Assembly (NCBI GenBank): GCA_964057225.1
Contig: CAXKVF010000088.1
Coordinates: forward strand, 124,001 to 188,000
Direction: 5' to 3'
Source of the DNA: Auanema rhodensis
Taxonomy: Eukaryota > Animalia > Nematoda
DNA length: 64,000 nt
Part shown: positions 1-64,000 of the stretch, piece after piece
How the letters are laid out: every line of letters begins with the position of its first letter
How positions within the stretch are numbered: the stretch's first letter is position 1
The notes under the pieces: model-generated
The model's input: only the letters and a program-made list of their open reading frames with translations
What the model was told of the DNA's origin: nothing
Database searches by the model: none
Program-made: the position numbers and the translations under genes

Positions 1-3000
1 TGGGGAATCTAATTTTGAAAACCGCATCTCTTTATCTTTCACGTGAAGCGAGTTACATACCAAGAGCACATTACGTGTACATTTAATTAGCATAAATTAA
101 AGTTCACGTAAAATTCAAAGTCATGGTTACCATGCACCAATATCAATAAAAATTTGTTTTTAGACTAATATGGACATGGGGAATCTAATTTTGAAAACCG
201 CATCTCTTTATCTTTCACGTGAAGCGAGTTACATACCAAGTGCACATCACGTGTACATTTAATTAGCATAAATTAAAGTTCACGTAAATTTCAAAGTCAT
301 GGTTACCATGCACCAATATCAATAAAAATTTGTTTTTAGACTAATATGGACATGGGGAATCTAATTTTGAAAACCGCATCTCTTTATCTTTCACGTGAAG
401 CGAGTTACATACCAAGTGCACATCACGTGTACATTTAATTAGCATAAATTAAAGTTCACGTAAATTTCAAAGTCATGGTTACCATGAACCAATATCAATA
501 CAAATTTGTTTTTAGACTAATATGGACATGGGGAATCTAATTTTGAAAACCGCATCTCTTTATCTTTCACGTGAAGCGAGTTACATACCAAGTGCACATC
601 ACGTGTACATTTAATTAGCATAAATTAAAGTTCACGTAAATTTCAAAGTCATGGTTACCATGAAGCAATATCAATAAAAATTTGTTTTTAGACTAATATG
701 GACATGGGGAATCTAATTTTGAAAACCGCATCTCTTTATCTTTCACGTGAAGCGAGTTACATACCAAGTGCACATCACGTGTACATTTAATTAGCATAAA
801 TTAAAGTTCACGTAAATTTCAAAGTCATGGTTACCATGAACCAATATCAATAAAAATTTGTTTTTAGACTAATATGGACATGGGGAATCTAATTTTGAAA
901 ACCGCATCTCTTTATCTTTCACGTGAAGCGAGTTACATACCAAGTGCACATCACGTGTACATTTAATTAGCATAAATTAAAGTTCACGTAAAATTCAAAG
1001 TCATGGTTACCATGAACCAATATCAATAAAAATTTGTTTTTAGACTAATATGGACATGGGGAATCTAATTTTGAAAACCGCATCTCTTTATCTTTCACGT
1101 GAAGCGAGTTACATACCAAGTGCACATCACGTGTACATTTAATTAGCATAAATTAAAGTTCACGTAAATTTCAAAGTCATGGTTACCATGCACCAATATC
1201 AATAAAAATTTGTTTTTAGACTAATATGGACATGGGGAATCTAATTTTGAAAACCGCATCTCTTTATCTTTCACGTGAAGCGAGTTACATACCAAGTGCA
1301 CATCACGTGTACATTTAATTAGCATAAATTAAAGTTCACGTAAAATTCAAAGTCATGGTTACCATGCACCAATATCAATAAAAATTTGTTTTTAGACTAA
1401 TATGGACATGGGGAATCTAATTTGGAAAACCGCATCTCTTTATCTTTCACGTGAAGCGAGTTACATACCAAGTGCACATCACGTGTACATTTAATCAGCA
1501 TAAATTAAAGTTCACGTAAATTTCAAAGTCATGGTTACCATGCACCAATATCAATAAAAATTTGTTTTTAGACTAATATGGACATGGGGAATCTAATTTT
1601 GAAAACCGCATCTCTTTATCTTTCACGTGAAGGGAGTTACATACCAAGTGCACATCACGTGTACATTTAATTAGCATAAATTAAAGTTCACGTAAATTTC
1701 AAAGTCATGGTTACCATGAAGCAATATCAATAAAAATTTGTTTTTAGACTAATATGGACATGGGGAATCTAATTTTGAAAACCGCATCTCTTTATCTTTC
1801 ACGTGAAGGGAGTTACATACCAAGTGCACATCACGTGTACATTTAATTAGCATAAATTAAAGTTCACGTAAATTTCAAAGTCATGGTTACCATGAACCAA
1901 TATCAATAAAAATTTGTTTTTAGACTAATATGGACATGGGGAATCTAATTTTGAAAACCGCATCTCTTTATCTTTCACGTGAAGCGAGTTACATACCAAG
2001 TGCACATCACGTGTACATTTAATTAGCATAAATTAAAGTTCACGTAAATTTCAAAGTCATGGTTACCATGCACCAATATCAATAAAAATTTGTTTTTAGA
2101 CTAATATGGACATGGGGAATCTAATTTTGAAAACCGCATCTCTTTATCTTTCACGTGAAGCGAGTTACATACCAAGTGCACATCACGTGTACAATTAATT
2201 AGCATAAATTAAAGTTCACGTAAATTTCAAAGTCATGGTTACCATGAACCAATATCAATAAAAATTTGTTTTTAGACTAATATGGACATGGGGAATCTAA
2301 TTTTGAAAACCGCATCTCTTTATCTTTCACGTGAAGCGAGTTACATACCAAGTGCACATTACGTGTACATTTAATTAGCATAAATTAAAGTTCACGTAAA
2401 TTTCAAAGTCATGGTTACCATGAACCAATATCAATACAAATTTGTTTTTAGACTAATATGGACATGGGGAATCTAATTTTGAAAACCGCATCTCTTTATC
2501 TTTCACGTGAAGCGAGTTACATACCAAGTGCACATTACGTGTACATTTAATTAGCATAAATTAAAGTTCACGTAAAATTCAAAGTCATGGTTACCATGCA
2601 CCAATATCAATAAAAATTTGTTTTTAGACTAATATGGACATGGGGAATCTAATTTTGAAAACCGCATCTCTTTATCTTTCACGTGAAGCGAGTTACATAC
2701 CAAGTGCACATCACGTGTACATTTAATTAGCATAAATTAAAGTTCACGTAAATTTCAAAGTCATGGTTACCATGCACCAATATCAATAAAAATTTGTTTT
2801 TAGACTAATATGGACATGGGGAATCTAATTTTGAAAACCGCATCTCTTTATCTTTCACGTGAAGGGAGTTACATACCAAGTGCACATCACGTGTACATTT
2901 AATTAGCATAAATTAAAGTTCACGTAAATTTCAAAGTCATGGTTACCATGAAGCAATATCAATAAAAATTTGTTTTTAGACTAATATGGACATGGGGAAT

Positions 3001-6000
3001 CTAATTTTGAAAACCGCATCTCTTTATCTTTCACGTGAAGGGAGTTACATACCAAGTGCACATCACGTGTACATTTAATTAGCATAAATTAAAGTTCACG
3101 TAAATTTCAAAGTCATGGTTACCATGAACCAATATCAATAAAAATTTGTTTTTAGACTAATATGGACATGGGGAATCTAATTTTGAAAACCGCATCTCTT
3201 TATCTTTCACGTGAAGCGAGTTACATACCAAGTGCACATCACGTGTACATTTAATTAGCATAAATTAAAGTTCACGTAAATTTCAAAGTCATGGTTACCA
3301 TGCACCAATATCAATAAAAATTTGTTTTTAGACTAATATGGACATGGGGAATCTAATTTTGAAAACCGCATCTCTTTATCTTTCACGTGAAGCGAGTTAC
3401 ATACCAAGTGCACATTACGTGTACATTTAATTAGCATAAATTAAAGTTCACGTAAAATTCAAAGTCATGGTTACCATGCACCAATATCAATAAAAATTTG
3501 TTTTTAGACTAATATGGACATGGGGAATCTAATTTTGAAAACCGCATCTCTTTATCTTTCACGTGAAGCGAGTTACATACCAAGTGCACATCACGTGTAC
3601 ATTTAATTAGCATAAATTAAAGTTCACGTAAATTTCAAAGTCATGGTTACCATGAACCAATATCAATAAAAATTTGTTTTTAGACTAATATGGACATGGG
3701 GAATCTAATTTTGAAAACCGCATCTCTTTATCTTTCACGTGAAGCGAGTTACATACCAAGTGCACATCACGTGTACATTTAATTAGCATAAATTAAAGTT
3801 CACGTAAATTTCAAAGTCATGGTTACCATGAACCAATATCAATACAAATTTGTTTTTAGACTAATATGGACATGGGGAATCTAATTTTGAAAACCGCATC
3901 TCTTTATCTTTCACGTGAAGCGAGTTACATACCAAGAGCACATTACGTGTACATTTAATTAGCATAAATTAAAGTTCACGTAAAATTCAAAGTCATGGTT
4001 ACCATGCACCAATATCAATAAAAATTTGTTTTTAGACTAATATGGACATGGGGAATCTAATTTTGAAAACCGCATCTCTTTATCTTTCACGTGAAGCGAG
4101 TTACATACCAAGTGCACATCACGTGTACATTTAATTAGCATAAATTAAAGTTCACGTAAATTTCAAAGTCATGGTTACCATGCACCAATATCAATAAAAA
4201 TTTGTTTTTAGACTAATATGGACATGGGGAATCTAATTTTGAAAACCGCATCTCTTTATCTTTCACGTGAAGCGAGTTACATACCAAGTGCACATCACGT
4301 GTACATTTAATTAGCATAAATTAAAGTTCACGTAAATTTCAAAGTCATGGTTACCATGAACCAATATCAATACAAATTTGTTTTTAGACTAATATGGACA
4401 TGGGGAATCTAATTTTGAAAACCGCATCTCTTTATCTTTCACGTGAAGCGAGTTACATACCAAGTGCACATCACGTGTACATTTAATTAGCATAAATTAA
4501 AGTTCACGTAAATTTCAAAGTCATGGTTACCATGAAGCAATATCAATAAAAATTTGTTTTTAGACTAATATGGACATGGGGAATCTAATTTTGAAAACCG
4601 CATCTCTTTATCTTTCACGTGAAGCGAGTTACATACCAAGTGCACATCACGTGTACATTTAATTAGCATAAATTAAAGTTCACGTAAATTTCAAAGTCAT
4701 GGTTACCATGAACCAATATCAATAAAAATTTGTTTTTAGACTAATATGGACATGGGGAATCTAATTTTGAAAACCGCATCTCTTTATCTTTCACGTGAAG
4801 CGAGTTACATACCAAGTGCACATCACGTGTACATTTAATTAGCATAAATTAAAGTTCACGTAAAATTCAAAGTCATGGTTACCATGCACCAATATCAATA
4901 AAAATTTGTTTTTAGACTAATATGGACATGGGGAATCTAATTTTGAAAACCGCATCTCTTTATCTTTTACGTGAAGCGAGTTACATACCAAGTGCACATC
5001 ACGTGTACATTTAATTAGCATAAATTAAAGTTCACGTAAATTTCAAAGTCATGGTTACCATGAACCAATATCAATAAAAATTTGTTTTTAGACTAATATG
5101 GACATGGGGAATCTAATTTTGAAAACCGCATCTCTTTATCTTTCACGTGAAGCGAGTTACATACCAAGTGCACATCACGTGTACATTTAATCAGCATAAA
5201 TTAAAGTTCACGTAAATTTCAAAGTCATGGTTACCATGCACCAATATCAATAAAAATTTGTTTTTAGACTAATATGGACATGGGGAATCTAATTTTGAAA
5301 ACCGCATCTCTTTATCTTTCACGTGAAGCGAGTTACATACCAAGTGCACATCACGTGTACATTTAATCAGCATAAATTAAAGTTCACGTAAATTTCAAAG
5401 TCATGGTTACCATGCACCAATATCAATAAAAATTTGTTTTTAGACTAATATGGACATGGGGAATCTAATTTTGAAAACCGCATCTCTTTATCTTTCACGT
5501 GAAGCGAGTTACATACCAAGTGCACATCACGTGTACATTTAATTAGCATAAATTAAAGTTCACGTAAATTTCAAAGTCATGGTTACCATGAACCAATATC
5601 AATAAAAATTTGTTTTTAGACTAATATGGACATGGGGAATCTAATTTTGAAAACCGCATCTCTTCATCTTTCACGTGAAGCGAGTTACATACCAAGTGCA
5701 CATCACGTGTACATTTAATTAGCATAAATTAAAGTTCACGTAAATTTCAAAGTCATGGTTACCATGCACCAATATCAATAAAAATTTGTTTTTAGACTAA
5801 TATGGACATGGGGGATCTAATTTTGAAAACCGCATCTCTTTATCTTTCACGTGAAGCGAGTTACATACCAAGTGCACATCACGTGTACATTTAATTAGCA
5901 TAAATTAAAGTTCACGTAAATTTCAAAGTCATGGTTACCATGAACCAATATCAATAAAAATTTGTTTTTAGACTAATATGGACATGGGGAATCTAATTTT

Positions 6001-9000
6001 GAAAACCGCATCTCTTTATCTTTCACGTGAAGCGAGTTACATACCAAGTGCACATCACGTGTACATTTAATTAGCATAAATTAAAGTTCACGTAAATTTC
6101 AAAGTCATGGTTACCATGCACCAATATCAATAAAAATTTGTTTTTAGACTAATATGGACATGGGGAATCTAATTTTGAAAACCGCATCTCTTTATCTTTT
6201 ACGTGAAGCGAGTTACATACCAAGTGCACATCACGTGTACATTTAATTAGCATAAATTAAAGTTCACGTAAATTTCAAAGTCATGGTTACCATGAACCAA
6301 TATCAATAAAAATTTGTTTTTAGACTAATATGGACATGGGGAATCTAATTTTGAAAACCGCATCTCTTTATCTTTCACGTGAAGCGAGTTACATACCAAG
6401 TGCACATCACGTGTACATTTAATCAGCATAAATTAAAGTTCACGTAAATTTCAAAGTCATGGTTACCATGCACCAATATCAATAAAAATTTGTTTTTAGA
6501 CTAATATGGACATGGGGAATCTAATTTTGAAAACCGCATCTCTTTATCTTTCACGTGAAGCGAGTTACATACCAAGTGCACATCACGTGTACATTTAATC
6601 AGCATAAATTAAAGTTCACGTAAATTTCAAAGTCATGGTTACCATGCACCAATATCAATAAAAATTTGTTTTTAGACTAATATGGACATGGGGAATCTAA
6701 TTTTGAAAACCGCATCTCTTTATCTTTCACGTGAAGCGAGTTACATACCAAGTGCACATCACGTGTACATTTAATTAGCATAAATTAAAGTTCACGTAAA
6801 TTTCAAAGTCATGGTTACCATGAACCAATATCAATAAAAATTTGTTTTTAGACTAATATGGACATGGGGAATCTAATTTGAAAACCGCATCTCTTTATCT
6901 TTCACGTGAAGCGAGTTACATACCAAGTGCACATCACGTGTACATTTAATTAGCATAAATTAAAGTTCACGTAAATTTCAAAGTCATGGTTACCATGCAC
7001 CAATATCAATAAAAATTTGTTTTTAGACTAATATGGACATGGGGGATCTAATTTTGAAAACCGCATCTCTTTATCTTTCACGTGAAGCGAGTTACATACC
7101 AAGTGCACATCACGTGTACATTTAATAGCATAAATTAAAGTTCACGTAAATTTCAAAGTCATGGTTAACCATGAACCAATATCAATAAAAATTTGTTTTT
7201 AGACTAATATGGACATGGGGAATCTAATTTTGAAAACCGCATCTCTTTATCTTTCACGTGAAGCGAGTTACATACCAAGTGCACATCACGTGTACATTTA
7301 ATTAGCATAAATTAAAGTTCACGTAAATTTCAAAGTCATGGTTACCATGCACCAATATCAATAAAAATTTGTTTTTAGACTAATATGGACATGGGGAATC
7401 TAATTTTGAAAACCGCATCTCTTTATCTTTCACGTGAAGCGAGTTACATACCAAGTGCACATCACGTGTACATTTAATTAGCATAAATTAAAGTTCACGT
7501 AAATTTCAAAGTCATGGTTACCATGCACCAATATCAATAAAAATTTGTTTTTAGACTAATATGGACATGGGGAATCTATTTTGAAAACCCGCATCTCTTT
7601 ATCTTTCACGTGAAGCGAGTTACATACCAAGTGCACATCACGTGTACATTTAATTAGCATAAATTAAAGTTCACGTAAATTTCAAAGTCATGGTTACCAT
7701 GCACCAATATCAATAAAAATTTGTTTTTAGACTAATATGGACATGGGGATCTAATTTGAAAACCGCATCTCTTTATCTTTCACGTGAAGCGAGTTACATA
7801 CCAAGTGCACATCACGTGTACATTTAATTAGCATAAATTAAAGTTCACGTAAATTTCAAAGTCATGGTTACCATGAACCAATATCAATAAAAATTTGTTT
7901 TTAGACTAATATGGACATGGGGAATCTAATTTTGAAAACCGCATCTCTTTATCTTTCACGTGAAGCGAGTTACATACCAAGTGCACATCACGTGTACATT
8001 TAATTAGCATAAATTAAAGTTCACGTAAATTTCAAAGTCATGGTTACCATGCACCAATATCAATAAAAATTTGTTTTTAGACTAATATGGACATGGGGAA
8101 TCTAATTTTGAAAACCGCATCTCTTTATCTTTCACGTGAAGCGAGTTACATACCAAGTGCACATCACGTGTACATTTAATTAGCATAAATTAAAGTTCAC
8201 GTAAATTTCAAAGTCATGGTTACCATGCACCAATATCAATAAAAATTTGTTTTTAGACTAATATGGACATGGGGAATCTAATTTTGAAAACCGCATCTCT
8301 TTATCTTTCACGTGAAGCGAGTTACATACCAAGTGCACATCACGTGTACATTTAATTAGCATAAATTAAAGTTCACGTAAATTTCAAAGTCATGGTTACC
8401 ATGCACCAATATCAATAAAAATTTGTTTTTAGACTAATATGGACATGGGGAATCTAATTTTGAAAACCGCATCTCTTTATCTTTCACGTGAAGCGAGTTA
8501 CATACCAAGTGCACATCACGTGTACATTTAATTAGCATAAATTAAAGTTCACGTAAATTTCAAAGTCATGGTTACCATGAACCAATATCAATAAAAATTT
8601 GTTTTTAGACTAATATGGACATGGGGAATCTAATTTTGAAAACCGCATCTCTTTATCTTTCACGTGAAGCGAGTTACATACCAAGTGCACATCACGTGTA
8701 CATTTAATTAGCATAAATTAAAGTTCACGTAAATTTCAAAGTCATGGTTACCATGCACCAATATCAATAAAAATTTGTTTTTAGACTAATATGGACATGG
8801 GGAATCTAATTTTGAAAACCGCATCTCTTTATCTTTCACGTGAAGCGAGTTACATACCAAGTGCACATCACGTGTACATTTAATTAGCATAAATTAAAGT
8901 TCACGTAAATTTCAAAGTCATGGTTACCATGCACCAATATCAATAAAAATTTGTTTTTAGACTAATATGGACATGGGGAATCTAATTTTGAAAACCGCAT

Positions 9001-39000: not shown

Positions 39001-39341
39001 AATTTCAAAGTCATGGTTACCATGAACCAATATCAATGAAAATTTGTTTTTAGACTAATATGGACATGGGGAATCTAATTTTGAAAACCGCATCTCTTTA
39101 TCTTTCACGTGAAGCGAGTTACATACCAAGTGCACATCACGTGTACATTTAATTAGCATAAATTAAAGTTCACGTAAATTTCAAAGTCATGGTTACCATG
39201 AAGCAATATCAATAAAAATTTGTTTTTAGACTAATATGGACATGTGGAATCTAATTTTGAAAACCGCATCTCTTTATCTTTCACGTGAAGCGAGTTACAT
39301 ACCAAGTGCACATCACGTGTACATTTAATTAGCATAAATTA
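1..39341. repeat. 176-bp tandem satellite array (left block, ~223 monomers; continues beyond window start)
   Basis: Monomer TGGGGAATCTAATTTTGAAAACCGC...GACTAATATGGACA restarts at 1, 177, 881, 1761 and 2641 (period 176). Copies differ by only a few substitutions. The array stops at ...AGCATAAATTA (39341). Confidence 0.99.
39336..39341 (+). repeat. Probable target-site duplication AAATTA (left copy; right copy 44540-44545)
   Basis: Satellite ends ...GCATAAATTA on the left and resumes AAATTAAAGTTCACG on the right, in register, so 6 bp are duplicated. The TSD is short and AT-rich, so its exact length is uncertain. Confidence 0.65.
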
Positions 39342-39348
39342 GTCAAGG

Positions 39349-39354
39349 TTTATT
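39349..39354 (-). terminator. Polyadenylation-like signal AATAAA at the element 1 3' end
   Basis: TTTATT on + strand, 7 nt from the element/satellite junction. It is followed by CCTTGAC and no poly(A) tail. Confidence 0.6.
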
Positions 39355-39882
39355 GTTCTTTATCACAGGTTATAACAATAGCAGTTTTGAAAAAAGAAAG
39401 TGGATAAAAGAAGTTCCTTACAATATGAACATGATTATATAAATTGATTGACATGAAAACATTAATTGTATAGAGATAAGAATAATTATTGAATCAATTA
39501 TGTCAGTAGAAAATATATATTCTAAACAAGTAAATCTATGTGTCATAGTTGTCAACCCATCCTTGATAAACAAGGGATTTGTTCAGTTCAAAAAATATGA
39601 CCTGACCTCATTTTTACTTTTACCAGGTGCGGTGGAACTTAGAGAAAAAGTCGAGCCCGTTCTGGTAATCAGAGGTAACTATCACCAGATTCGTATGGCT
39701 AATGCCTATAGAGTCCATGGTGCAGTAACATTGTAGCAAAGGGAACAAGGATGTGGTTGAAAACAAAAAATGATACATGAAGAACATAGTTTGCATAGAT
39801 ATTTGTAGAAGACATATTGAAATAATAATTAGAGAACAAAATATCATAAGCAGACGAAAAACATTAATAATGAAAGTGCAAG

Positions 39883-42747
39883 CTAATCGCTAAGGAAAAG
39901 TTGAAGATGTTTGCGAAATTTGGGAGCTTTTTCAAGACTCACAATGTTTGATGGTATTGAATTCCAGAGTTCTATGGCTCTGTACTCGATACCTCTTCTA
40001 GTTTGAGTCTTCTGGACGTTTGGAAAATCCACAGTCCATTCGTGACGCCTTAGTGAGTGTGTGAATTTTTTGAGCTTAAAAATTTTCAAAGTATTCTCTG
40101 AAATTGGTTGTTTTATTTGGTTAAAATAAAAAATTAAATCGAAAACTAGTCTTCTGAAAAATAACTTTTGCCCCCCTAGCAAAGACAGTTGATCTTCATA
40201 GCTCATTTTAGATCCTGAGCGCATGAAAACTGCGCGCAGAAACTTTTTTTGAACATTTTCAATCCGGTCTTTGTCTTTAGAATCTTGTGGGGACCAGATA
40301 ATAGAAGCATATTCCAATATTGGTCTTATGTAAGTACAGAATAAGTTGTACATAAGAGAAGGCGATTTAGAGTAGAAACAACGTAAAATTATTTTACATT
40401 TTTTTGCTGCTTCACTTGTGATTTTGTTTATGTGGTTTGAGAAGGAGAGATTGTAATCTGTGAATACTCCAAGATCTTTGTAACAATCTACTGAAGATAG
40501 GTTAAAGTTACCAAAAGTGAAAGCGAAGTTTTCAGGATTACTAATTGGTTTATTTGACATAACCATTATTTTAGATTTAGAGATGTTAACGGCCATCCCG
40601 TTTGAGTCGCACCATAATTTTAATTGATCAAGGGCCCGCTGTAAACTAGTAGGGTTTTTGCTGTAGAGCTTCAAATCATCTGCATAGAGAATGGAGCTGA
40701 CATCATTAGGAAAATCGGATGTTATGTCATTTATGTAAAATAAAAACAACAGAGGACCAAGAACTGTACCTTGTGGTACACCACAAGTGAGTTGTTTAGG
40801 TGGTGATAAGGAATTATTGACCATAACTGAAAAAAACCTACCAGAGATGAAACTTTGGAGAAAGGAATGAAGTGGGCCTTGAATACCAATGGACTTGAGT
40901 TTTGAAAAAAGAGTAGAATGTTGTATAAGATCGAAGGCTTTTGAAAAGTCGATATAAGCTACAAAAACCGGAGTATTACAGTCCAATGATGATCTGAAAG
41001 AGATGTGGCTACTGAGAATTGCAGAAACAGTGCTTCTTTTAGGAAGGAAGGCGTGTTGATTTTGAGATATGGCACCATTGGAAATACCAAAATTAAGAAG
41101 TGGAGTACGTATTATACGTTCAAAGATTTTTGAGAGACTGGAAGTGAGTGAAATTGGGCGGTAGTTACTTGGATTTTCAGGTCGGCCCGTTTTGAAAATG
41201 GGACGAATCCAGGCTAACTTCCAATCAGGAGGACAAGTTGAGGTAACTAACAAATTGTGAAAAATAAAAGCTAATGGATTAGCCAGAGTAAAAGCACATT
41301 GTTTAAGAAAGTAATATGGAATACCATCCGGAGATGTGGATACCCTGAGTGGAAGACTATGAAGAGTTTTGTAGACCAATTCAGGTGTTATATCCATGAA
41401 ATCAATGGTATGACTGGAAGAAGAAGAGACGGAAACATGAGTGTTTTCCTGAGAGACAAGAGGAGAAAGAGGAGAAACCGTGAAAACCTCGGCAAATGCT
41501 GACACTTTATCAATATCTGAAGAAACTGACACATTGTTGACAGTGAGGTTTGGAATGTCAGATGTTTTACCATTTAATCGGGCCTTACAAAAACGATAAA
41601 AAAGTTTGGAGTTTTTTAAGGCAGCAATACGCTCTTCCTCTAAAGCACAATTGATTTTTATTAGCTTGTCCAATTTTACTGAAAGATTTTTACGGCGAAT
41701 CTCGTCAGATAGATATAAAGAGCAACTTAGCCTGTTAATTTGATTTCTGAGTTTTGCAATGTTACGATCCGCTTTTTTATTTTTCCTCGGTTGTTTTTTA
41801 GGAACATAAATGTCAATGATTGAATGTAGAATAGAGATAAACTTTGAATACGATTGGAGTGGAGTAAGACCTGAAAGTTCAGAACAGAAGTCGATGTTGA
41901 CCAGTTGCCTATTGATACGTTCATAATCAGCCAAAAGGAAATTGCGGTCTGATAACATGGAGAGAGATGTGGGTTCAGCACTATGTAAATCTTGTAGATG
42001 AAAATTTTCAGATTTTGAAAGTATATGAAAGGTGATGGAAAAATGATCCGAAGCCCCAAGTGGACCAGATCGCTTGATATTGTTGACACAACGAACGTTA
42101 TTTGTAATTATATAGTCAAGAATATTTTCACCTCTAGTAGGAAAATTTACTAGCTGGTTTAGACAATTGTGATTGAGAAATTGGAGTAGAATTCTACTAG
42201 AAGGAGTAGGTTGAGAACATATACCAAGATCCCAGTTTATTTTAGGGAAATTAAGATCACCAGTGAGATAGAGAGACCGATTAACTAAATGATTTTGTAG
42301 ATCACAAAGATAGTTTGAGAAATCTAAGCTAGATGATGATGGAGAACGGTAACAAACAGAAAAAATAGAATTGGAAGATGTGATGAGAATATTTATAAAC
42401 TGTATGGTAGATGAATTACAAGAGCAGGAAAGAAGACGAAAAGTAATATGTTTTTTGATGAAAAGTAGTACACCACCACCCCGTGATGAACATCTATCAG
42501 CCCTGAGGATATTATAGATGTCACCTAACGGAAGAAGATTAGTGTTAAATTGGGGGTAAAGCCAGGACTCTGATATAGCAATTATATCAGGAGAATTGGG
42601 AGAGATGATAACTGGGAGAAGATGAAGTTTGTTGAGAATTGAGCGTGCATTGTAACGGTGAACAGAAGTGTAAGTGTGGTTAGAGACGAGAACAGGTGTT
42701 GACGATAACATTGGATCAACGAAAGGACCCGTTATTGGACAAAACAA
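39883..42747 (-). CDS. ORF2: apurinic-like endonuclease + reverse transcriptase (intact, ~950 aa)
   Basis: APE motifs YNARS, DIIAISESW, RGGGVLLFI, CYRSP, GDLN, LDY, SDH. RT motifs SPDGIP, NYRPISLTS, DFSKAFD, GVPQGTVLGPLLF, YADD (~40675-40686), KDLGV, RPILEYASIIWSP. The track start is a TTG and the first ATG is at 42711. The true start may be via frameshift from ORF1. Confidence 0.97.
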   Translation of the reverse strand: MFCPITGPFVDPMLSSTPVLVSNHTYTSVHRYNARSILNKLHLLPVIISPNSPDIIAISESWLYPQFNTNLLPLGDIYNILRADRCSSRGGGVLLFIKKHITFRLLSCSCNSSTIQFINILITSSNSIFSVCYRSPSSSSLDFSNYLCDLQNHLVNRSLYLTGDLNFPKINWDLGICSQPTPSSRILLQFLNHNCLNQLVNFPTRGENILDYIITNNVRCVNNIKRSGPLGASDHFSITFHILSKSENFHLQDLHSAEPTSLSMLSDRNFLLADYERINRQLVNIDFCSELSGLTPLQSYSKFISILHSIIDIYVPKKQPRKNKKADRNIAKLRNQINRLSCSLYLSDEIRRKNLSVKLDKLIKINCALEEERIAALKNSKLFYRFCKARLNGKTSDIPNLTVNNVSVSSDIDKVSAFAEVFTVSPLSPLVSQENTHVSVSSSSSHTIDFMDITPELVYKTLHSLPLRVSTSPDGIPYYFLKQCAFTLANPLAFIFHNLLVTSTCPPDWKLAWIRPIFKTGRPENPSNYRPISLTSSLSKIFERIIRTPLLNFGISNGAISQNQHAFLPKRSTVSAILSSHISFRSSLDCNTPVFVAYIDFSKAFDLIQHSTLFSKLKSIGIQGPLHSFLQSFISGRFFSVMVNNSLSPPKQLTCGVPQGTVLGPLLFLFYINDITSDFPNDVSSILYADDLKLYSKNPTSLQRALDQLKLWCDSNGMAVNISKSKIMVMSNKPISNPENFAFTFGNFNLSSVDCYKDLGVFTDYNLSFSNHINKITSEAAKKCKIILRCFYSKSPSLMYNLFCTYIRPILEYASIIWSPQDSKDKDRIENVQKKFLRAVFMRSGSKMSYEDQLSLLGGQKLFFRRLVFDLIFYFNQIKQPISENTLKIFKLKKFTHSLRRHEWTVDFPNVQKTQTRRGIEYRAIELWNSIPSNIVSLEKAPKFRKHLQLFLSD
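42716..42727 (-). promoter_or_regulatory. Candidate +1 ribosomal frameshift site TCC TTT CGT TGA at the ORF1/ORF2 junction (element 1)
   Basis: Last three ORF1 codons plus stop. ORF2 is open in the +1 frame (CCT TTC GTT GAT CCA ATG). The same motif occurs in element 2. Confidence 0.7.
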
Positions 42748-43785
42748 CAGAAGATGATGCAGAAGGACTACTCATAGATCTGGTATTAGGTCCAGTTGGT
42801 TTAACTACCCGAGGCGGATTTTTTCTCCTTCTTGGGCTTATTGAATGATTTTTATCTGTTGGTACAGACACCTGCCTATTGTTAGACCGACTGGGTCTAC
42901 CAGATTTACGAGGGGGGCTGGAGATGAGAGAAGAAATTGGTTTTAAGATTGAACTGCAAACGGCATCAACTACTGAAGGGGTTTCAGCTGGTTGAGTGTC
43001 CACAGTGACAGAGAGAGTGTTGATGGCATGCGAAGTAACATTGGTAGATTTACGGGGGACTTCAATAATTTTGAGATCCCGTACAAGAAAAGTCTTTTCA
43101 GTGTTATTTTCATTCTTGATTTTTGCTTCTTTTCGCAAGTTTTTCTCCAGTTCAATTTCGAAGGGGAGATAATCTCGTCGCAAAAACGTTTTTGAGAGGA
43201 AATCGAAGCATTTTGATTTATTGAATTTAATAACTTGAATAATCTTGTCACGTAAATCTACCGATGGACACGTAATTATGAGAGGGCCAGGGGAATTAGA
43301 TTTGAGAGTTGAACGTGCAATAGTAATTTGATTGCTATCGATCAAAGAAGACAAAGTGGTGTCCTGAGATTTCTCGATAATAAGATAATAAGTTTTAGTA
43401 ACAACAGAGGTTCAGTTGGAAATTCTGTTGACTTTAATGGCACTCGAAACCAAAGGGCTCTTTTGGCACGGTAGAGGTACTTTGTCTCCTCTGATCGTAA
43501 TTTTTGAAAATGACATGCTACATTGAGTGGGGAAAAAGTTGGAACACAGGTAGAATTAGTGTTGCTAGTGGTTTGAAATGAGTTAAAAGTTTGCTCTAAC
43601 TTATCTAAGCGGGATTTGAAATCCGTTTCGATAGTTTTTAAGCGAGCCTCGTGCGACGTGATACTAATTTTCATACAGTTAAGCTCATTTTTTATATCAT
43701 TTGACAATTTTGAAAAAGAGTTCTCGAGAGACTTTGAGAAATTTTGAAGAGCATTTGTAAGAAAATCATTAGTCACGAAAGACAT
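42716..43785 (-). CDS. ORF1 of element 1 (~356 aa), split by one frameshift near 43411-43345
   Basis: ATG at 43785 (MSFVTNDF...) is followed by a coiled-coil-like segment. The second frame continues ...IIEKSQDTTLSSLIDSN...FLRRDYLPFEIELEKNLRKEA...FLVRDLKII, then a basic Ser/Pro-rich tail ending GSFR-stop. The C-terminal part is homologous to 61390-61851. Confidence 0.8.
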
Positions 43786-44000
43786 ATTGAAAAACGAGGG
43801 AGTAAAAGAAGGGAAGTAAGAAAGAATAAGAATAAACACTGAAGTGGAAAATAAAAAAGAAACAAATACGAGAGAAAGGAAATAATGATAAAACTAAAAT
43901 GCGATACGAAAGAGAGCGCACCTTGACAAAGCCAGTCCGACGAAAATTTCCTTGACAGAAACGGATCCGGATCCAAACAGCGGAAGTCAACTGACGAGTG
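43786..44000 (-). promoter_or_regulatory. 5' UTR with putative internal promoter (Inr-like TCAGTT at 43994-43989)
   Basis: Unique sequence begins CACTCGTCAGTTGACTTCCGCTG on the minus strand. TCAGT-type initiators are common at invertebrate LINE 5' ends. A 12-bp palindrome GGATCCGGATCC lies at 43963-43974, and a pyrimidine-rich tract precedes the ORF1 ATG. Confidence 0.45.
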
Positions 44001-44510
44001 GGAGGTCAACTGACGAGTGAGGAGGTCAACTGACGAGTGGGAGGTCAACTGACGAGTGTGGAGGTCAACTGACGAGTGGGAGGTCAACTGACGAGTGGGG
44101 AGGTCAACTGACGAGTGGGAGGTCAACTGACGAGTGAGGAGGTCAACTGACGAGTGGGAGGTCAACTGACGAGTGAGGAGGTCAACTGACGAGTGAGAGG
44201 TCAACTGACGAGTGGGGAGGTCAACTGACGAGTGGGGAGGTCAACTGACGAGTGGGGAGGTCAACTGACGAGTGGGGAGGTCAACTGACGAGTGGGAGGT
44301 CAACTGACGAGTGGGAGGTCAACTGACGAGTGAGGAGGTCAACTGACGAGTGGGAGGTCAACTGACGAGTGGGAGGTCAACTGACGAGTGAGGACGTCAA
44401 CTGACGAGTGAGGAGGTCAACTGACGAGTGAGGAGGTCAACTGACGAGTGAGGAGGTCAACTGACGAGTGAGGAGGTCAACTGACGAGTGAGGAGGTCAA
44501 CTGACGAGTG
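43982..44510. repeat. 19/20-bp minisatellite (27 copies) at the 5' end of element 1
   Basis: Invariant 15-nt core GTCAACTGACGAGTG counted 27 times, separated by 4-5-nt linkers GGAG/AGGAG/GGGAG/TGGAG/AGAG/AGGAC. Confidence 0.98.
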
Positions 44511-44539
44511 TTCACGTAAATTTCAAAATTTTAAATTTC
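44510..44539 (+). other. Junction filler templated from adjacent satellite
   Basis: GTTCACGTAAATTTCAAA (44510-44527) copies 44548-44565. TAAATTTCAAA (44532-44542) is a second partial copy. Confidence 0.85.
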
Positions 44540-47500
44540 AAATTAAAGTTCACGTAAATTTCAAAGTCATGGTTACCATGAAGCAATATCAATAAAAATT
44601 TGTTTTTAGACTAATATGGACATGGGGAATCTAATTTTGAAAACCGCATCTCTTTATCTTTTACGTGAAGCGAGTTACATACCAAGTGCACATCACGTGT
44701 ACATTTAATTAGCATAAATTAAAGTTCACGTAAATTTCAAAGTCATGGTTACCATGAACCAATATCAATAAAAATTTGTTTTTAGACTAATATGGACATG
44801 GGGAATCTAATTTTGAAAACCGCATCTCTTTATCTTTCACGTGAAGCGAGTTACATACCAAGTGCACATCACGTGTACATTTAATTAGCATAAATTAAAG
44901 TTCACGTAAATTTCAAAGTCATGGTTACCATGAAGCAATATCAATAAAAATTTGTTTTTAGACTAATATGGACATGTGGAATCTAATTTTGAAAACCGCA
45001 TCTCTTTATCTTTCACGTGAAGCGAGTTACATACCAAGTGCACATCACGTGTACATTTAATTAGCATAAATTAAAGTTCACGTAAAATTCAAAGTCATGG
45101 TTACCATGAACCAATATCAATAAAAATTTGTTTTTAGACTAATATGGACATGGGGAATCTAATTTTGAAAACCGCATCTCTTTATCTTTCACGTGAAGCG
45201 AGTTACATACCAAGTGCACATCACGTGTACATTTAATTAGCATAAATTAAAGTTCACGTAAATTTCAAAGTCATGGTTACCATGAACCAATATCAACAAA
45301 AATTTGTTTTTAGACTAATATGGACATGGGGAATCTAATTTTGGAAACCGCATCTCTTTATCTTTCACGTGAAGCGAGTTACATACCAAGTGCACATCAC
45401 GTGTACATTTAATTAGCATAAATTAAAGTTCACGTAAATTTCAAAGTCATGGTTACCATGCACCAATATCAATAAAAATTTGTTTTTAGACTAATATGGA
45501 CATGGGGAATCTAATTTTGAAAACCGCATCTCTTTATCTTTTACGTGAAGCGAGTTACATACCAAGTGCACATCACGTGTACATTTAATTAGCATAAATT
45601 AAAGTTCACGTAAATTTCAAAGTCATGGTTACCATGAAGCAATATCAATAAAAATTTGTTTTTAGACTAATATGGACATGGGGAATCTAATTTTGAAAAC
45701 CGCATCTCTTTATCTTTCACGTGAAGCGAGTTACATACCAAGTGCACATCACGTGTACATTTAATTAGCATAAATTAAAGTTCACGTAAATTTCAAAGTC
45801 ATGGTTACCATGAACCAATATCAATAAAAATTTGTTTTTAGACTAATATGGACATGGGGAATCTAATTTTGAAAACCGCATCTCTTTATCTTTCACGTGA
45901 AGCGAGTTACATACCAAGTGCACATCACGTGTACATTTAATTAGCATAAATTAAAGTTCACGTAAATTTCAAAGTCATGGTTACCATGCACCAATATCAA
46001 TAAAAATTTGTTTTTAGACTAATATGGACATGGGGAATCTAATTTTGAAAACCGCATCTCTTTATCTTTCACGTGAAGCGAGTTACATACCAAGTGCACA
46101 TCACGTGTACATTTAATTAGCATAAATTAAAGTTCACGTAAATTTCAAAGTCATGGTTACCATGCACCAATATCAATAAAAATTTGTTTTTAGACTAATA
46201 TGGACATGGGGAATCTAATTTTGAAAACCGCATCTCTTTATCTTTCACGTGAAGCGAGTTACATACCAAGTGCACATCACGTGTACATTTAATTAGCATA
46301 AATTAAAGTTCACGTAAATTTCAAAGTCATGGTTACCATGAACCAATATCAATAAAAATTTGTTTTTAGACTAATATGGACATGGGGAATCTAATTTTGA
46401 AAACCGCATCTCTTTATCTTTCACGTGAAGCGAGTTACATACCAAGTGCACATCACGTGTACATTTAATTAGCATAAATTAAAGTTCACGTAAATTTCAA
46501 AGTCATGGTTACCATGCACCAATATCAATAAAAATTTGTTTTTAGACTAATATGGACATGGGGAATCTAATTTTGAAAACCGCATCTCTTTATCTTTCAC
46601 GTGAAGCGAGTTACATACCAAGTGCACATCACGTGTACATTTAATTAGCATAAATTAAAGTTCACGTAAATTTCAAAGTCATGGTTACCATGAAGCAATA
46701 TCAATAAAAATTTGTTTTTAGACTAATATGGACATGGGGAATCTAATTTTGAAAACCGCATCTCTTTATCTTTCACGTGAAGCGAGTTACATACCAAGTG
46801 CACATCACGTGTACATTTAATTAGCATAAATTAAAGTTCACGTAAATTTCAAAGTCATGGTTACCATGCACCAATATCAATAAAAATTTGTTTTTAGACT
46901 AATATGGACATGGGGAATCTAATTTTGAAAACCGCATCTCTTTATCTTTCACGTGAAGCGAGTTACATACCAAGTGCACATCACGTGTACATTTAATTAG
47001 CATAAATTAAAGTTCACGTAAATTTCAAAGTCATGGTTACCATGCACCAATATCAATAAAAATTTGTTTTTAGACTAATATGGACATGGGGAATCTAATT
47101 TTGAAAACCGCATCTCTTTATCTTTCACGTGAAGCGAGTTACATACCAAGTGCACATCACGTGTACATTTAATTAGCATAAATTAAAGTTCACGTAAATT
47201 TCAAAGTCATGGTTACCATGAAGCAATATCAATAAAAATTTGTTTTTAGACTAATATGGACATGTGGAATCTAATTTTGAAAACCGCATCTCTTTATCTT
47301 TCACGTGAAGCGAGTTACATACCAAGTGCACATCACGTGTACATTTAATTAGCATAAATTAAAGTTCACGTAAAATTCAAAGTCATGGTTACCATGAACC
47401 AATATCAATAAAAATTTGTTTTTAGACTAATATGGACATGGGGAATCTAATTTTGAAAACCGCATCTCTTTATCTTTCACGTGAAGCGAGTTACATACCA

Positions 47501-59500: not shown

Positions 59501-61232
59501 CACGTAAATTTCAAAGTCATGGTTACCATGCACCAATATCAATAAAAATTTGTTTTTAGACTAATATGGACATGGGGAATCTAATTTTGAAAACCGCATC
59601 TCTTTATCTTTCACGTGAAGCGAGTTACATACCAAGTGCACATCACGTGTACATTTAATTAGCATAAATTAAAGTTCACGTAAATTTCAAAGTCATGGTT
59701 ACCATGCACCAATATCAATAAAAATTTGTTTTTAGACTAATATGGACATGGGGAATCTAATTTTGAAAACCGCATCTTTTTATCTTTCACGTGAAGCGAG
59801 TTACATACCAAGTGCACATCACGTGTACATTTAATTAGCATAAATTAAAGTTCACGTAAATTTCAAAGTCATGGTTACCATGAAGCAATATCAATAAAAA
59901 TTTGTTTTTAGACTAATATGGAAATGGGGAATCTAATTTTGAAAACCGCATCTCTTTATCTTTCACGTGAAGCGAGTTACATACCAAGTGCACATCACGT
60001 GTACATTTAATTAGCATAAATTAAAGTTCACGTAAATTTCAAAGTCATGGTTACCATGAAGCAATATCAATAAAAATTTGTTTTTAGACTAATATGGACA
60101 TGGAAAATCTAATTTTGAAAACCGCATCTCTTTATCTTTCACGTGAAGCGAGTTACATACCAAGTGCACATCACGTGTACATTTAATTAGCATAAATTAA
60201 AGTTCACGTAAATTTCAAAGTCATGGTTACCATGAACCAATATCAATAAAAATTTGTTTTTAGACTAATATGGACATGGGGAATCTAATTTTGAAAACCG
60301 CATCTCTTTATCTTTCACGTGAAGCGAGTTACATACCAAGTGCACATCACGTGTACATTTAATTAGCATAAATTAAAGTTCACGTAAATTTCAAAGTCAT
60401 GGTTACCATGCACCAATATCAATAAAAATTTGTTTTTAGACTAATATGGACATGGGGAATCTAATTTTGAAAACCGCATCTCTTTATCTTTCACGTGAAG
60501 CGAGTTACATACCAAGTGCACATCACGTGTACATTTAATTAGCATAAATTAAAGTTCACGTAAAATTCAAAGTCATGGTTACCATGCACCAATATCAATA
60601 AAAATTTGTTTTTAGACTAATATGGACATGGGGAATCTAATTTTGAAAACCGCATCTCTTTATCTTTTACGTGAAGCGAGTTACATACCAAGTGCACATC
60701 ACGTGTACATTTAATTAGCATAAATTAAAGTTCACGTAAATTTCAAAGTCATGGTTACCATGCACCAATATCAATAAAAATTTGTTTTTAGACTAATATG
60801 GACATGGGGAATCTAATTTTGAAAACCGCATCTCTTTATCTTTCACGTGAAGCGAGTTACATACCAAGTGCACATCACGTGTACATTTAATTAGCATAAA
60901 TTAAAGTTCACGTAAATTTCAAAGTCATGGTTACCATGCACCAATATCAATAAAAATTTGTTTTTAGACTAATATGGACATGGGGAATCTAATTTTGAAA
61001 ACCGCATCTCTTTATCTTTCACGTGAAGCGAGTTACATACCAAGTGCACATCACGTGTACATTTAATTAGCATAAATTAAAGTTCACGTAAATTTCAAAG
61101 TCATGGTTACCATGAAGCAATATCAATAAAAATTTGTTTTTAGACTAATATGGAAATGGGGAATCTAATTTTGAAAACCGCATCTCTTTATCTTTCACGT
61201 GAAGCGGGTTACATACCAAGTGCACATCACGT
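44540..61232. repeat. 176-bp tandem satellite array (right block, ~95 monomers)
   Basis: Same monomer and orientation as the left block. Ends at ...GTGCACATCACGT (61232). Confidence 0.99.
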
Positions 61233-61236
61233 CACG

Positions 61237-61406
61237 AATTATCTTCCTTTTGAAATTATCTTCCTTTTGAATTGATCTTCCTTTTGAAATTATCTTCCTT
61301 TTGAATTGATCTTCCTTTTGAAATTATCTTCCTTTTGAAATTATCTTCCTTTTGAAATTATCTTCCTTTTGAAATTATCTTCCTTTTGAAATTATCTTCC
61401 TTTTGA
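61237..61406. repeat. 17-bp tandem array (10 copies) at the 5' truncation point of element 2
   Basis: Unit AATTATCTTCCTTTTGA x8 plus variant ATTGATCTTCCTTTTGA x2 (61271, 61305). The last copy runs straight into ORF1 sequence (YLPFEIQLENNLREEAK). Confidence 0.97.
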
Positions 61407-61851
61407 AATTCAACTGGAAAACAACCTTCGCGAGGAAGCAAAAGAAAAAAACAAAAACAACACTAAGTCTGTCTTTTTGGTACGAGATCTTCGACTTATT
61501 GAAGTTTCCCGCAATCCAGCCGATCCTCCAAACCCTCAAATAGCTCCCACTTCTTCTTGTAATCAAACTCCTAAAATACCATCTATTCACAACGTTCCAT
61601 TACCAACACTCCATTCTCAAACTCTCACATCCCCAACTCTTTTTTCTAGCCCCCCTTGTAAATCTGGTAGAATGAGCCGGTCGAAGGAAAGACAGAACCG
61701 CACGTCAAAAGACAAGCGTTCTTCTGTTAGCCCAAGACGTCGCAAAAATCCACCACGATCCGCAAAATTAACCACAGATCAAATTACCAGATCTGTTAGC
61801 ATGAACAATACATCTCAACGTCTCACGTCTGACAAAATGTCCTTTCGTTAA
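61390..61851 (+). pseudogene. C-terminal remnant of ORF1 (5'-truncated)
   Basis: NYLPFEIQLENNLREEAKEKNKNNTKSVFLVRDLRLIEV...SSPPCKSGRMSRS...SPRRRKNPPR...MSFR-stop aligns with element 1 DYLPFEIELEKNLRKEAKIKNENNTEKTFLVRDLKIIEV...SPRRRKNPPR...GSFR-stop. Confidence 0.92.
61840..61851 (+). promoter_or_regulatory. Candidate +1 ribosomal frameshift site TCC TTT CGT TAA (element 2)
   Basis: Last three ORF1 codons plus stop. The ORF2 frame (+1) is open from 61805 and has no ATG until 62612. Confidence 0.72.
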
Positions 61852-64000
61852 CACTGTCACGTCTTCAACCCCCCCTGTCTCACATCCTACCAGCCTCTCA
61901 GTTCAGTGTCTTAATGCACGTTCTATTCTTAACAAACTTCATATACTATCCCACGTTATTTCTTTATCCACTCCTGATATAATTGCAATATCAGAATCAT
62001 GGCTTTTTCCTGAGTTCGATACCCACCTACTCCCATGTAAACATACTTACACTATTTTTAGAGCCGATAGGTGTCTCTCACGTGGTGGTGGTGTTGTCCT
62101 CTATATTAAAAGTCATATCAAACCTTTTCTTCTTTCCTGTTCTTCTCCTCAATCTTCTATACAATTCATTAACTTACTCATACCTTCACTTAATGCTGTT
62201 TTCTCACTTTGTTATCGTCCTCCAACAGCTTCTCATTCAGATTTCATTTCGTTTCTTTCTGATCTACGTAAACAAATTTCCAAACGATCGTTCTTCCTAA
62301 CGGGCGATCTTAATTTTCCTAAAATCAACTGGGACCTCGGTATTTGCTCTCAACCATGCTCCTCTAGTAGATCTATTCTTCAATTTCTTAACGATAGCTG
62401 TTCTCATCAGTTGGTAAAGTTCCCTACCAGAGGCAAGAACATTCTTGATTATGTTATCACTGATAACATATCCAGTGTAGGCAACATATCCCGTTCTTCC
62501 CCCCTCGGCTCCTCGGATCACCATTCTGTGGTTTTCCAAATTGTTTCAGACTCTTTTCAGTTAGCTAATACAATCAGCTCTTCTAATACTTTGTCTCCGG
62601 TAGCATTACCTATGTTTTCTGATCGCAATTTTCAAGTTGCTGACTACAATCTCATCAATCATAGACTAGCCAAAATTGATTTCGCTAATCATCTCTCCGG
62701 TCTCACTCCTTTAGATTCTTACTCTAAACTTGTTCACATTCTTCACTCGGTCATTGATAGCTGCGTTCCCAAAAAACAAGAAAGAAGAAAAAAGAAGATT
62801 GACCGAGATATTTTAAAACTCTCATCTCATATAAAAAAACTCAGTTGTTCTTATCATCATCATGATGAATCTCGTCGTAAAAAACTTTCACATTCTCTTG
62901 ATAAACTTATCAAGAATAGATTGGCTTTGGAAGAGGAACGTATTGCCAACTATAATAATTCAAAACTTCTTTACCGCTTTTGCAGAACCCGTTTGGGTGG
63001 CAGCACTTCAGATATCCCAAATCTCAAAATAGATAATGATTCTGTTTCGTCTGATTCTGACAAAGCTTCTATCTTTGCTACTACCTTCTCTGTTCGCCCC
63101 CTTCCTATCTCTCTACCACATGCTCCTCATTCCTTTTCTTCTACTATTATCGACTTTATTGATGTCTCCCCTCTCAACGTTCACAAAATTCTCTGTCAGT
63201 TACCTCTTCGGGTATCAACATCCCCAGACGGAATCCCTTATTTCTTCCTAAAAAATTGTGCTTCTACTCTCTCTCAGCCTCTGGCCTTTGTTTTCCACAA
63301 TCTACTTGTTTCCTCCTCTTGCCCTCCTGACTGGAAAACAGCTTGGATTCGTCCCGTTCATAAATCAGGACTTTCTTCTAACCCGGCTAATTATCGTCCT
63401 ATTTCTCTCACATCCAGTCTATCTAAAGTTTTTGAACGTCTCCTTCGTTCACCTCTTCTTGACTTTGGTATTTCCTCCGGCTTTATTTCTCCTAATCAGT
63501 TTGCTTTTCTTCCAAAACGCAATACTGTATCAGCAATTCTTAGTAGTCATGTTCTCTGGAGATCTGCTGTAGACAAGAAAAAACCTGTTTATGTTGCCTT
63601 TATTGACTTTTCTAAGGCTTTTGATCTCATAAATCATTCCGTTCTGTTAGCTAAATTAAAATCAATTGGCATTGCCGGCTGTATTCTCACTTTTCTCAAA
63701 AACTTCATTACTAATAGATCTTTCTCTGTATTAGTTAATTACTCTCTATCCGTCACAAATTCTTTGCCCTGTGGAGTTCCACAGGGGACAGTACTGGGTC
63801 CTCTTCTTTTTTTATTTTATATAAATGATATTACATCAAATTTACCTGATGATGTACATCCAACTCTTTATGCAGACGATCTTAAACTAAGCAGCACAAA
63901 TCCGGTAAGTTTACAACTAGCTTTGAATATTCTCAAAAACTGGTGTCTATCTAACGGTATGAAAGTTAATACTTCCAAATCCAAAGTTATGATTATATCG
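61844..64000 (+). CDS. ORF2 of element 2: APE endonuclease + reverse transcriptase (partial, open to window end; absent from the ORF track)
   Basis: Manual translation is stop-free from 61805 to 64000: LNARSILNKLH, DIIAISESW, RGGGVVLYIK, CYRPP, GDLNFP, LDY, SDH, SPDGIPY, NYRPISLTS, IDFSKAFD, GVPQGTVLGPLLF, YADD (63869-63880). Confidence 0.96.

Follow-up and report, generated by a model that had tools for sequence, protein, structure and literature searches.

Retrotransposons without long terminal repeats (non-LTR retrotransposons), or long interspersed nuclear elements (LINEs), encode reverse transcriptases (RTs) that jump between template ends and add extra bases, and R2 forms both snap-back junctions and junctions with extra templates (PMC11331408); serial template jumping by these enzymes is also cited in PMC12039810, and telomerase is phylogenetically close to them (PMC12039810). 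Here we analyze a 64,000-nt stretch of the genome of the nematode Auanema rhodensis (contig CAXKVF010000088.1, positions 124,001–188,000; hereafter the window), in which a 176-bp satellite is interrupted by two non-LTR retrotransposons, i.e., element 1 (E1, full length, minus strand) and element 2 (E2, truncated, plus strand). Where E2 is truncated inside its first open reading frame (ORF1), the first 17 nt that remain of the element are repeated ten times in tandem. Such arrays are real, they stand exactly at 5′ junctions, and they match each insertion's own end. We lean towards the reading that, at a real template end, the last ~17–23 nt are copied repeatedly before joining to the target.

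In common with R2 and other non-LTR RTs, the polymerase appears to continue past the template end with little or no homology and with few extra bases at the joint (PMC11331408, PMC12039810), and R2-like snap-back junctions occur in these elements too (copy L041, below); unlike in R2 and other non-LTR RT junctions, however, a single short end is here re-used, in some cases dozens of times. Surveys of R1/R2 and L1/ZfL2 junctions (including PMC11331408) do not mention phased arrays of an element's own last 17–23 nt, and our search of the open-access literature turned up no account of truncated LINE junctions with own-end arrays. With telomerase and the bacterial RT DRT2, which makes concatenated complementary DNA (cDNA), the elements would share the production of tandem DNA from one short, re-copied stretch of RNA (PMC12039810). 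Telomerase and DRT2 use a dedicated RNA, a bounded template and an alignment region, whereas here any end sequence appears to serve, microhomology is at most 1 nt and the units measure 16–23 nt.

Repeats at the ends of LINEs are known in other forms. Mouse L1 carries 5′ monomer repeats. The fungal elements MoTeR and FoTeR have variable-number tandem repeats (VNTRs) at the 5′ ends of full-length copies, which have been attributed to slippage or recombination (PMC12857005). The arrays described here resemble both in being variable-number 5′ repeats of full-length elements, perhaps linked to promoters; however, the L1, MoTeR and FoTeR repeats are part of the element consensus, whereas here the unit is the terminal 16–23 nt itself, unit length varies within a family, and arrays are found also at truncations in coding sequence. 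The 3′ microsatellite tails of LINEs such as eel UnaL2 and the I factor, ascribed to RT slippage at initiation, are likewise short tandem repeats at an element end that are thought to arise by slippage on the template, but they belong to the 3′ end and to initiation and have element-owned units of 3–8 nt, whereas the present arrays belong to the 5′ end and to termination and have units of 16–23 nt. The elements are otherwise ordinary LINEs, with an unusual and apparently unreported mode of finishing their 5′ ends.

An array of ORF1 coding sequence at the truncation point of E2

The 176-bp satellite fills nearly all of the 64 kb (346 copies in the window by Tandem Repeats Finder, TRF), and mapping of its monomers leaves two gaps, which are occupied by E1 and E2 (Table 1). 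The E2 gap opens with a short filler made up of CACG, a repeat of the bases that end the target, and AATT, the 3′ part of one more unit that is incomplete, and continues with the ten 17-nt units, for which TRF reports 61237–61410 with a 17-nt period, 10.2 copies, 94% matches and no indels. Unit 10 is the original element sequence, from which ORF1 resumes at 61411 with CAACTGG. The units differ solely at the seam, where units 2 and 4 read GAATTG in place of GAAATT, which gives the seam order A B A B A A A A A A. Both TRF and direct reading bear out the original prediction of a tenfold 17-nt array of ORF1 coding sequence at the truncation point, with variation confined to the seam; the span given there, 61233–61420, needs correction at its end, as the array stops at 61410.

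The E2-family sequence ...GACTATCTTCCTTTTGAAATTCAACTGG... or a one-base variant of it is found exactly once in 14 other distinct copies, so that the E2 unit amounts to 17 contiguous family bases duplicated head-to-tail. The homologous E1 site (43174–43154, minus strand) is single copy, as had been claimed. Since the site is single copy in every other copy examined, an internal repeat of a subfamily is ruled out as the origin of the array. Within the window, TRF detects no other tandem repeat in E2, just one (9 nt, 2.7 copies) in the 4.6-kb body of E1, and the element bodies surveyed hold no internal arrays comparable to those at the 5′ ends. The observations support the view that the array was generated at the truncation point out of the element's own terminus. 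The ATT microhomology by which the polymerase was proposed to realign finds no support: the E2 family reads GACTATC and shares one T, and the ATT overlap appeared because the comparison had used E1 (GATTATC) and not E2's own family.

One alternative is that the arrays are inherited promoter monomers of the 5′ untranslated region (UTR), that of E2 being an internal repeat of a subfamily or an artefact of assembly. For an artefact speaks the fact that no read bridges the whole E2 array. Logan contigs from 4 public runs (3 studies, 3 organism labels) cover bins 61304–61405 and the boundary between array and ORF1, one of the runs covering the array only from 61338; because any contig exceeds one 17-nt unit, those over 61304–61405 should span unit seams. 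None of the Logan contigs bridges the satellite to the array, and bins 61236–61303, with both variant units, are without depth, so that the E2 copy number rests on the assembly. However, array words are present in 4 independent runs, and the locus has been assembled twice, identically and with ten units each time, on contigs C95 and C101, the latter holding a near-identical duplicate of the C95 block with both elements. This rules out an artefact for the array as such, although its copy number is not shown by the contigs. With the 17-mer single copy in the 14 other distinct family copies, and with the unit cores of two further arrays (L057 and L065, below) also single copy elsewhere, the alternative is largely refuted for E2, and we consider it highly improbable overall.

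Own-end arrays at other truncated insertions

The genome (180.9 Mb in 112 contigs) was searched with the E2 sequence, and full-length E1 and a full-length E2-family copy served as queries to list family members and their start points. About 40 5′ junctions were retrieved and analyzed with TRF, and collapsing obvious later duplications gave 16 independent truncated insertions within the satellite. Three have clean arrays (E2, L057 and L065), one a complex array (L067), one a snap-back (L041) and one an A-rich filler (L059), and ten are plain joins. The expectation that independent truncations carry arrays of their own unit is thus upheld by L057 and L065 and, in complex form, by L067, and it fails for the 10 of 16 that have none, which in part matches an outcome that the original prediction had named as refuting it.

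L057 (C3:24025892) is 100% identical to E1, truncated in the RT domain, and has 9.3 copies of a 19-nt unit. The unit corresponds to 19 consecutive bases of E1, the overlap being a single T, and the innermost seam has G instead of T. L065 (C6:20442919), also 100% identical to E1, is truncated in the 3′ UTR and has 2.1 copies of 20 nt, i.e., two units of 19 nt plus a seam C, behind an A9 filler. Comparison of the unit start with the base after the unit gives 1 shared nt in E2 and L057 and 0 in L065, and the L057 and L065 unit cores are single copy in all other copies examined. A match of 17–19 nt directly upstream of the junction is far beyond what chance would produce. TTG is present in all three clean truncated units (chance ~0.014), and in E2 and L057 its offset from the unit start is approximately that in the canonical 5′ units, which is a weak hint of sequence preference.

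Upstream of the true end of L067 lie re-copies of 16 nt and 23 nt of a segment that starts 7 nt inside, each preceded by the target-like sequence AATTT. L041 (C4:23316366 region, oriented ~679–730), a truncated E2-family copy, has a 20-nt inverted copy of bases +10 to +29 directly upstream; a hairpin with an inverted loop was rejected for this junction, as family comparison identifies the 9 loop bases as direct element sequence, hence a 20-nt snap-back. The 29-nt filler of E1 holds a 16-nt re-copy of satellite sequence lying ~10 nt upstream and a shorter satellite-like piece, which points to several template switches on the target. The snap-back in L041, the target-templated fillers in E1 and L067 and the A-rich fillers show a jumpy polymerase. 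Two further candidates were dismissed, namely L059–61, where a messy A-rich filler has no clean repeat, and the 19-nt repeat at L052, which belongs to a neighbouring inverted element and is no 5′ array.

Such a polymerase could be supplied by the host, if a repair enzyme of the theta type annealed, extended, released and re-annealed, and thereby made the arrays while sealing the 5′ junction. Polymerase-theta repair is heavily used in nematode germlines, and its insertions are likewise made by repeated short synthesis on nearby templates, in direct and inverted orientation and with tiny microhomologies. The target-templated fillers of E1 and L067 and the 20-nt snap-back of L041 are equally typical of theta-type end joining, and the re-copied unit of L067 apparently contains target-like bases. 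However, templated insertions by polymerase theta are generally known as one or a few short copies of flanking DNA, whereas the arrays here have 10 to 55 phased units. They are also direct repeats of the plus-strand end of the element, for which RNA would be the simplest template, and unit size is uniform in full-length copies of about six related families. We therefore regard host repair as an unlikely source of the arrays, and prefer repeated copying of the template end before joining to the target.

Arrays at the 5′ ends of full-length copies

Arrays of at least 2 units are present at the 5′ ends of 20 of 24 independent full-length copies, which belong to about six related families (65–100% identical), vs 4 of 16 truncated copies (Fisher p = 0.0003). 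The full-length arrays have a median of 6.6 units and a maximum of at least 55, with units of 16–23 nt, most often 18–19. Their excess on full-length copies fits a reaction that needs a template end; part of the difference may be due to inheritance.

Unit length and seam bases vary between insertions. Within one family and with the same terminal sequence, L074 has six perfect 17-nt units whereas L073 has 2.8 units of 20–23 nt, and of two copies that are 97% alike, L046 has 54 perfect 18-nt units and L047 has 15 units of 19 nt. We take this as evidence that arrays are made or extended at each insertion, and not merely inherited. Nearly all unit variation lies at the seams, where 0–3 bases have been gained or lost, and in the E1 array all length variation does so too. 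The 5′-most blocks are homogeneous (five identical units in E1, four units in L051, 14 in L071) above more mixed inner units, so that the arrays look grown outward, and the outermost units are often incomplete, in varied phase.

The unit core TTGACCT is found in all families but one, which has GTGACCT, and is kept across families that are only ~65% identical; it was seen in the E1 array (43982–44510) and in L027–L030, L032–L036, L046, L047, L053, L054, L073 and L074. The initiator-like sequence TCAGTT is a further component of E1-type units, and the conserved 5′ unit may be a functional module that perhaps corresponds to the start-site region. A one-base difference separates the array units from the unit next to the body in all E1 copies checked, the array units having C and that unit T, which indicates that E1 arrays are at least partly inherited and not wholly made afresh. 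Inherited promoter monomers are favored by this partial inheritance of full-length arrays and by the conserved TGACCT core, and the full-length arrays thus agree in part with that explanation through the core and the C/T difference; the E2 array, with its 17-mer single copy elsewhere, does not.

The arrays could also have grown after integration, from a small duplication made at that step and enlarged by slippage or unequal exchange in the recombining satellite, processes that certainly alter long arrays. The duplicated E1 locus varies in unit number (C95, 27; C101, 32), the differences lying in mid-array, from which it follows that arrays also change at the DNA level, or that one locus is mis-assembled. 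The A B A B order in E2 suggests duplication of two units, and the 5′ VNTRs of fungal telomeric non-LTR elements have been ascribed to slippage and recombination (PMC12857005). Slippage, however, leaves unexplained why the arrays are positioned only at 5′ junctions and are absent from the 4.6-kb bodies. Some insertions are moreover very young: neither L057 nor L065 differs from E1 (100% identity), yet L057 already carries an array of 9 units. The two assembly copies of the E2 array do not differ, and later growth does not readily account for variation concentrated at seams or for outermost units that are often incomplete. As the origin of the arrays, later growth seems to us quite unlikely.

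A proposed model of repeated template-end copying

For the preferred reading, repeated copying of the template end, the following course of events is proposed. The elements would integrate by target-primed reverse transcription, in which the growing cDNA reaches the physical 5′ end of the RNA, whether this is the genuine 5′ end or one created by breakage or shortening of the RNA. The polymerase would then run on and re-copy the last 17–23 nt of the template many times, by re-starts that need little or no base pairing and that sometimes gain or lose 1–3 bases at the seam, and joining of the cDNA end to the upstream target would close the series, often leaving an incomplete outermost unit. On full-length RNAs this reaction would build and renew the 5′ array with its TGACCT(C) core, possibly the start-site region, and the array would be partly inherited via the RNA and lengthened at later jumps. 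On truncated templates it would make an array from whatever sequence forms the end, in E2 from ORF1 codons. That ORF1, the RT domain, the 3′ UTR and the 5′ end all yield units fits array formation independent of sequence. We infer that the copying takes place during integration, that RNA is the template and that the element's own RT is the enzyme.

That units of unrelated sequence are uniform in size suggests that a physical ruler is at work; we speculate that this ruler could be a terminal piece of RNA of RT-footprint size, re-used by end-to-end template jumps. Truncated copies with arrays may derive from RNAs that truly ended at that point, and plain joins from cDNA captured midway. It is a further speculation that small-RNA-guided cleavage makes internal RNA ends and so decides which truncated copies gain arrays. 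More tentatively still, and as a possibility that we rate below an even chance, the RT may be able to add repeats processively at whatever 5′ end an RNA has, measured by a ruler of ~18–20 nt, and may rebuild and lengthen the 5′ array at each jump.

A strict analogy with telomerase, to which the original prediction had likened the process, is not supported. Pfam detects an endonuclease and an RT in the protein and no domain besides these, and thus none specific to telomerase; the units are of arbitrary sequence and indicate no dedicated template RNA. No alignment region is evident either, and the product end has no stretch for re-pairing beyond the 1 nt shared in E2 and L057, with none in L065.

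Several points weigh against template-end copying or restrict it. The array reaction is not obligatory, as 10 of 16 truncated copies are without an array, and the clean truncated cases number only three. The A B A B order in E2 could reflect a 34-nt duplication at the DNA level and not independent seams, and five target-like bases apparently form part of the L067 unit, a composition easier to reconcile with a DNA-templated step. The reliance of nematode germlines on polymerase theta makes the host polymerase more credible, and the C/T difference and the 27 vs 32 units at the duplicated locus add inheritance and DNA-level change (or mis-assembly) to the history of the E1 arrays. Finally, no read spans the whole E2 array.

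Anatomy of the elements and their target sites

The elements are non-LTR (LINE) retrotransposons with an apurinic-type endonuclease, as judged by domains, truncation and target-site duplications (TSDs). In ORF2, Pfam matches to RVT_1 (E = 5e-34) and Exo_endo_phos_2 (E = 9e-8) are both above the cut-offs, and a weaker Exo_endo_phos match is just under its own cut-off. The many copies have a constant 3′ end base and variable 5′ starts, and the TSDs are TAATTT in E1 and probably ACGT (4 bp) in the E2 family. The solved structures closest to the protein are those of L1 ORF2p and the R2 RT; the nearest database proteins are 35% identical and come from metagenomes, and matches in the Atlas carry generic LINE names only. 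The C-terminus of ORF2 is without a zinc knuckle, and the 3′ ends of E1 and of the E2 family have neither a poly(A) tail nor a 3′ microsatellite. E2 is ~66% identical to members of the E1 family, and its body matches positions 844–4612 of a full-length relative, up to C95:189166.

Table 1 Features of E1, E2 and the adjoining satellite, in window coordinates
Feature	Position	Strand	Basis or remark
E1, full-length non-LTR retrotransposon	39342–44539	−	Satellite gap
E1 body: 5′ UTR, ORF1 in two frames, ORF2 of 954 aa (endonuclease + RT), 3′ UTR	39342–43981	−	
E1 site homologous to the repeated 17-mer of E2, single copy	43154–43174	−	
E1 5′ array: 27 units of 19–21 nt	43982–44510	−	TRF and direct reading
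E1 filler, 29 nt, between target and array	44511–44539	−	Direct reading
E1 probable 6-bp TSD TAATTT, 5′ copy	44540–44545	−	3′ copy at 39336–39341
Last satellite monomer before E2	61057–61232	+	5′ junction after ...CACATCACGT, fixed site of most E2-family copies
E2	61233–64000	+	Satellite gap; starts inside ORF1, leaves the window and ends ~1166 nt further
E2 junction filler: CACG (61233–61236) and partial unit AATT (61237–61240)	61233–61240	+	Direct reading
E2 array: ten 17-nt units of ORF1 coding sequence	61241–61410	+	Direct reading and TRF
E2 body: remaining ORF1, then ORF2 endonuclease and RT	61411–64000	+	

All but a few of the ~40 surveyed junctions are located in the 176-bp satellite. 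In the E2 family the junction site is ...CACATCACGT or a point no more than a few bases away (exact in 9 of 15 independent copies, a few bases off in 4 more), and E1-type junctions lie at ...ACTTTAATTT, in the orientation opposite to that of the E2 type. These fixed, family-specific positions identify the elements as satellite-site-specific LINEs. E1 and the E2 family have a 3′-terminal motif in common just before the junction, i.e., AACCTGTGAT, a few bases and GAACAATAAACC (39342–39420; L035:9400–9470), which may be a recognition site for the RT.

Some copies have been rearranged together with their surroundings. L033 (C4:13.118 Mb, oriented 7947–7948) is a full-length E2-family copy with a 20-unit array, cut after ~2.7 kb by inverted satellite, and this break is a rearrangement within the satellite. 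Fragments from the 3′ terminus of the E2 family recur many times at C4:13.06–13.14 Mb and C7:0.48–0.55 Mb; those on C4 measure 163 nt and are spaced mostly by 527 bp or a multiple thereof, those on C7 measure 36 nt and are spaced by roughly 2–6 kb. It seems that higher-order satellite repeats captured the short fragments, which were then amplified along with them. At L025:3112–3152 (C3:10142594–10142634), where an interrupted E1 copy meets an unrelated inserted sequence, there is a perfect twofold 21-nt repeat, and the same unrelated sequence also flanks L072.

Implications for LINEs and for the germline genome

The germline genome of A. rhodense has been described as comprising 180 Mb on 7 chromosomes, of which ~61% is satellite that is discarded from somatic cells, according to a 2026 preprint (10.64898/2026.08.27.747507); a keyword search of its main text returned no mention of the elements or their arrays. 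The 176-bp satellite may be part of the DNA discarded from the soma. If it is germline-restricted, it would constitute a refuge for active elements.

The completion and attachment of the 5′ end is the least understood step in the LINE life cycle, and the origin and growth of 5′ promoter arrays are also open questions. The ~40 junctions from one genome suggest a defined reaction, the re-copying of the last 17–23 nt of the template, that could explain both. Tandem repeats would thereby gain a concrete way of arising from unique, even coding, sequence. If the reading is true, the elements would stand, as a living intermediate, between retrotransposon RTs that jump between templates and repeat addition of the telomerase type. 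Were the RT in fact capable of processive repeat addition, these LINEs would have a solution to their 5′ end-replication problem comparable to the one that telomerase provides to chromosomes, with minisatellites seeded from coding sequence in germline-restricted satellite as a by-product.

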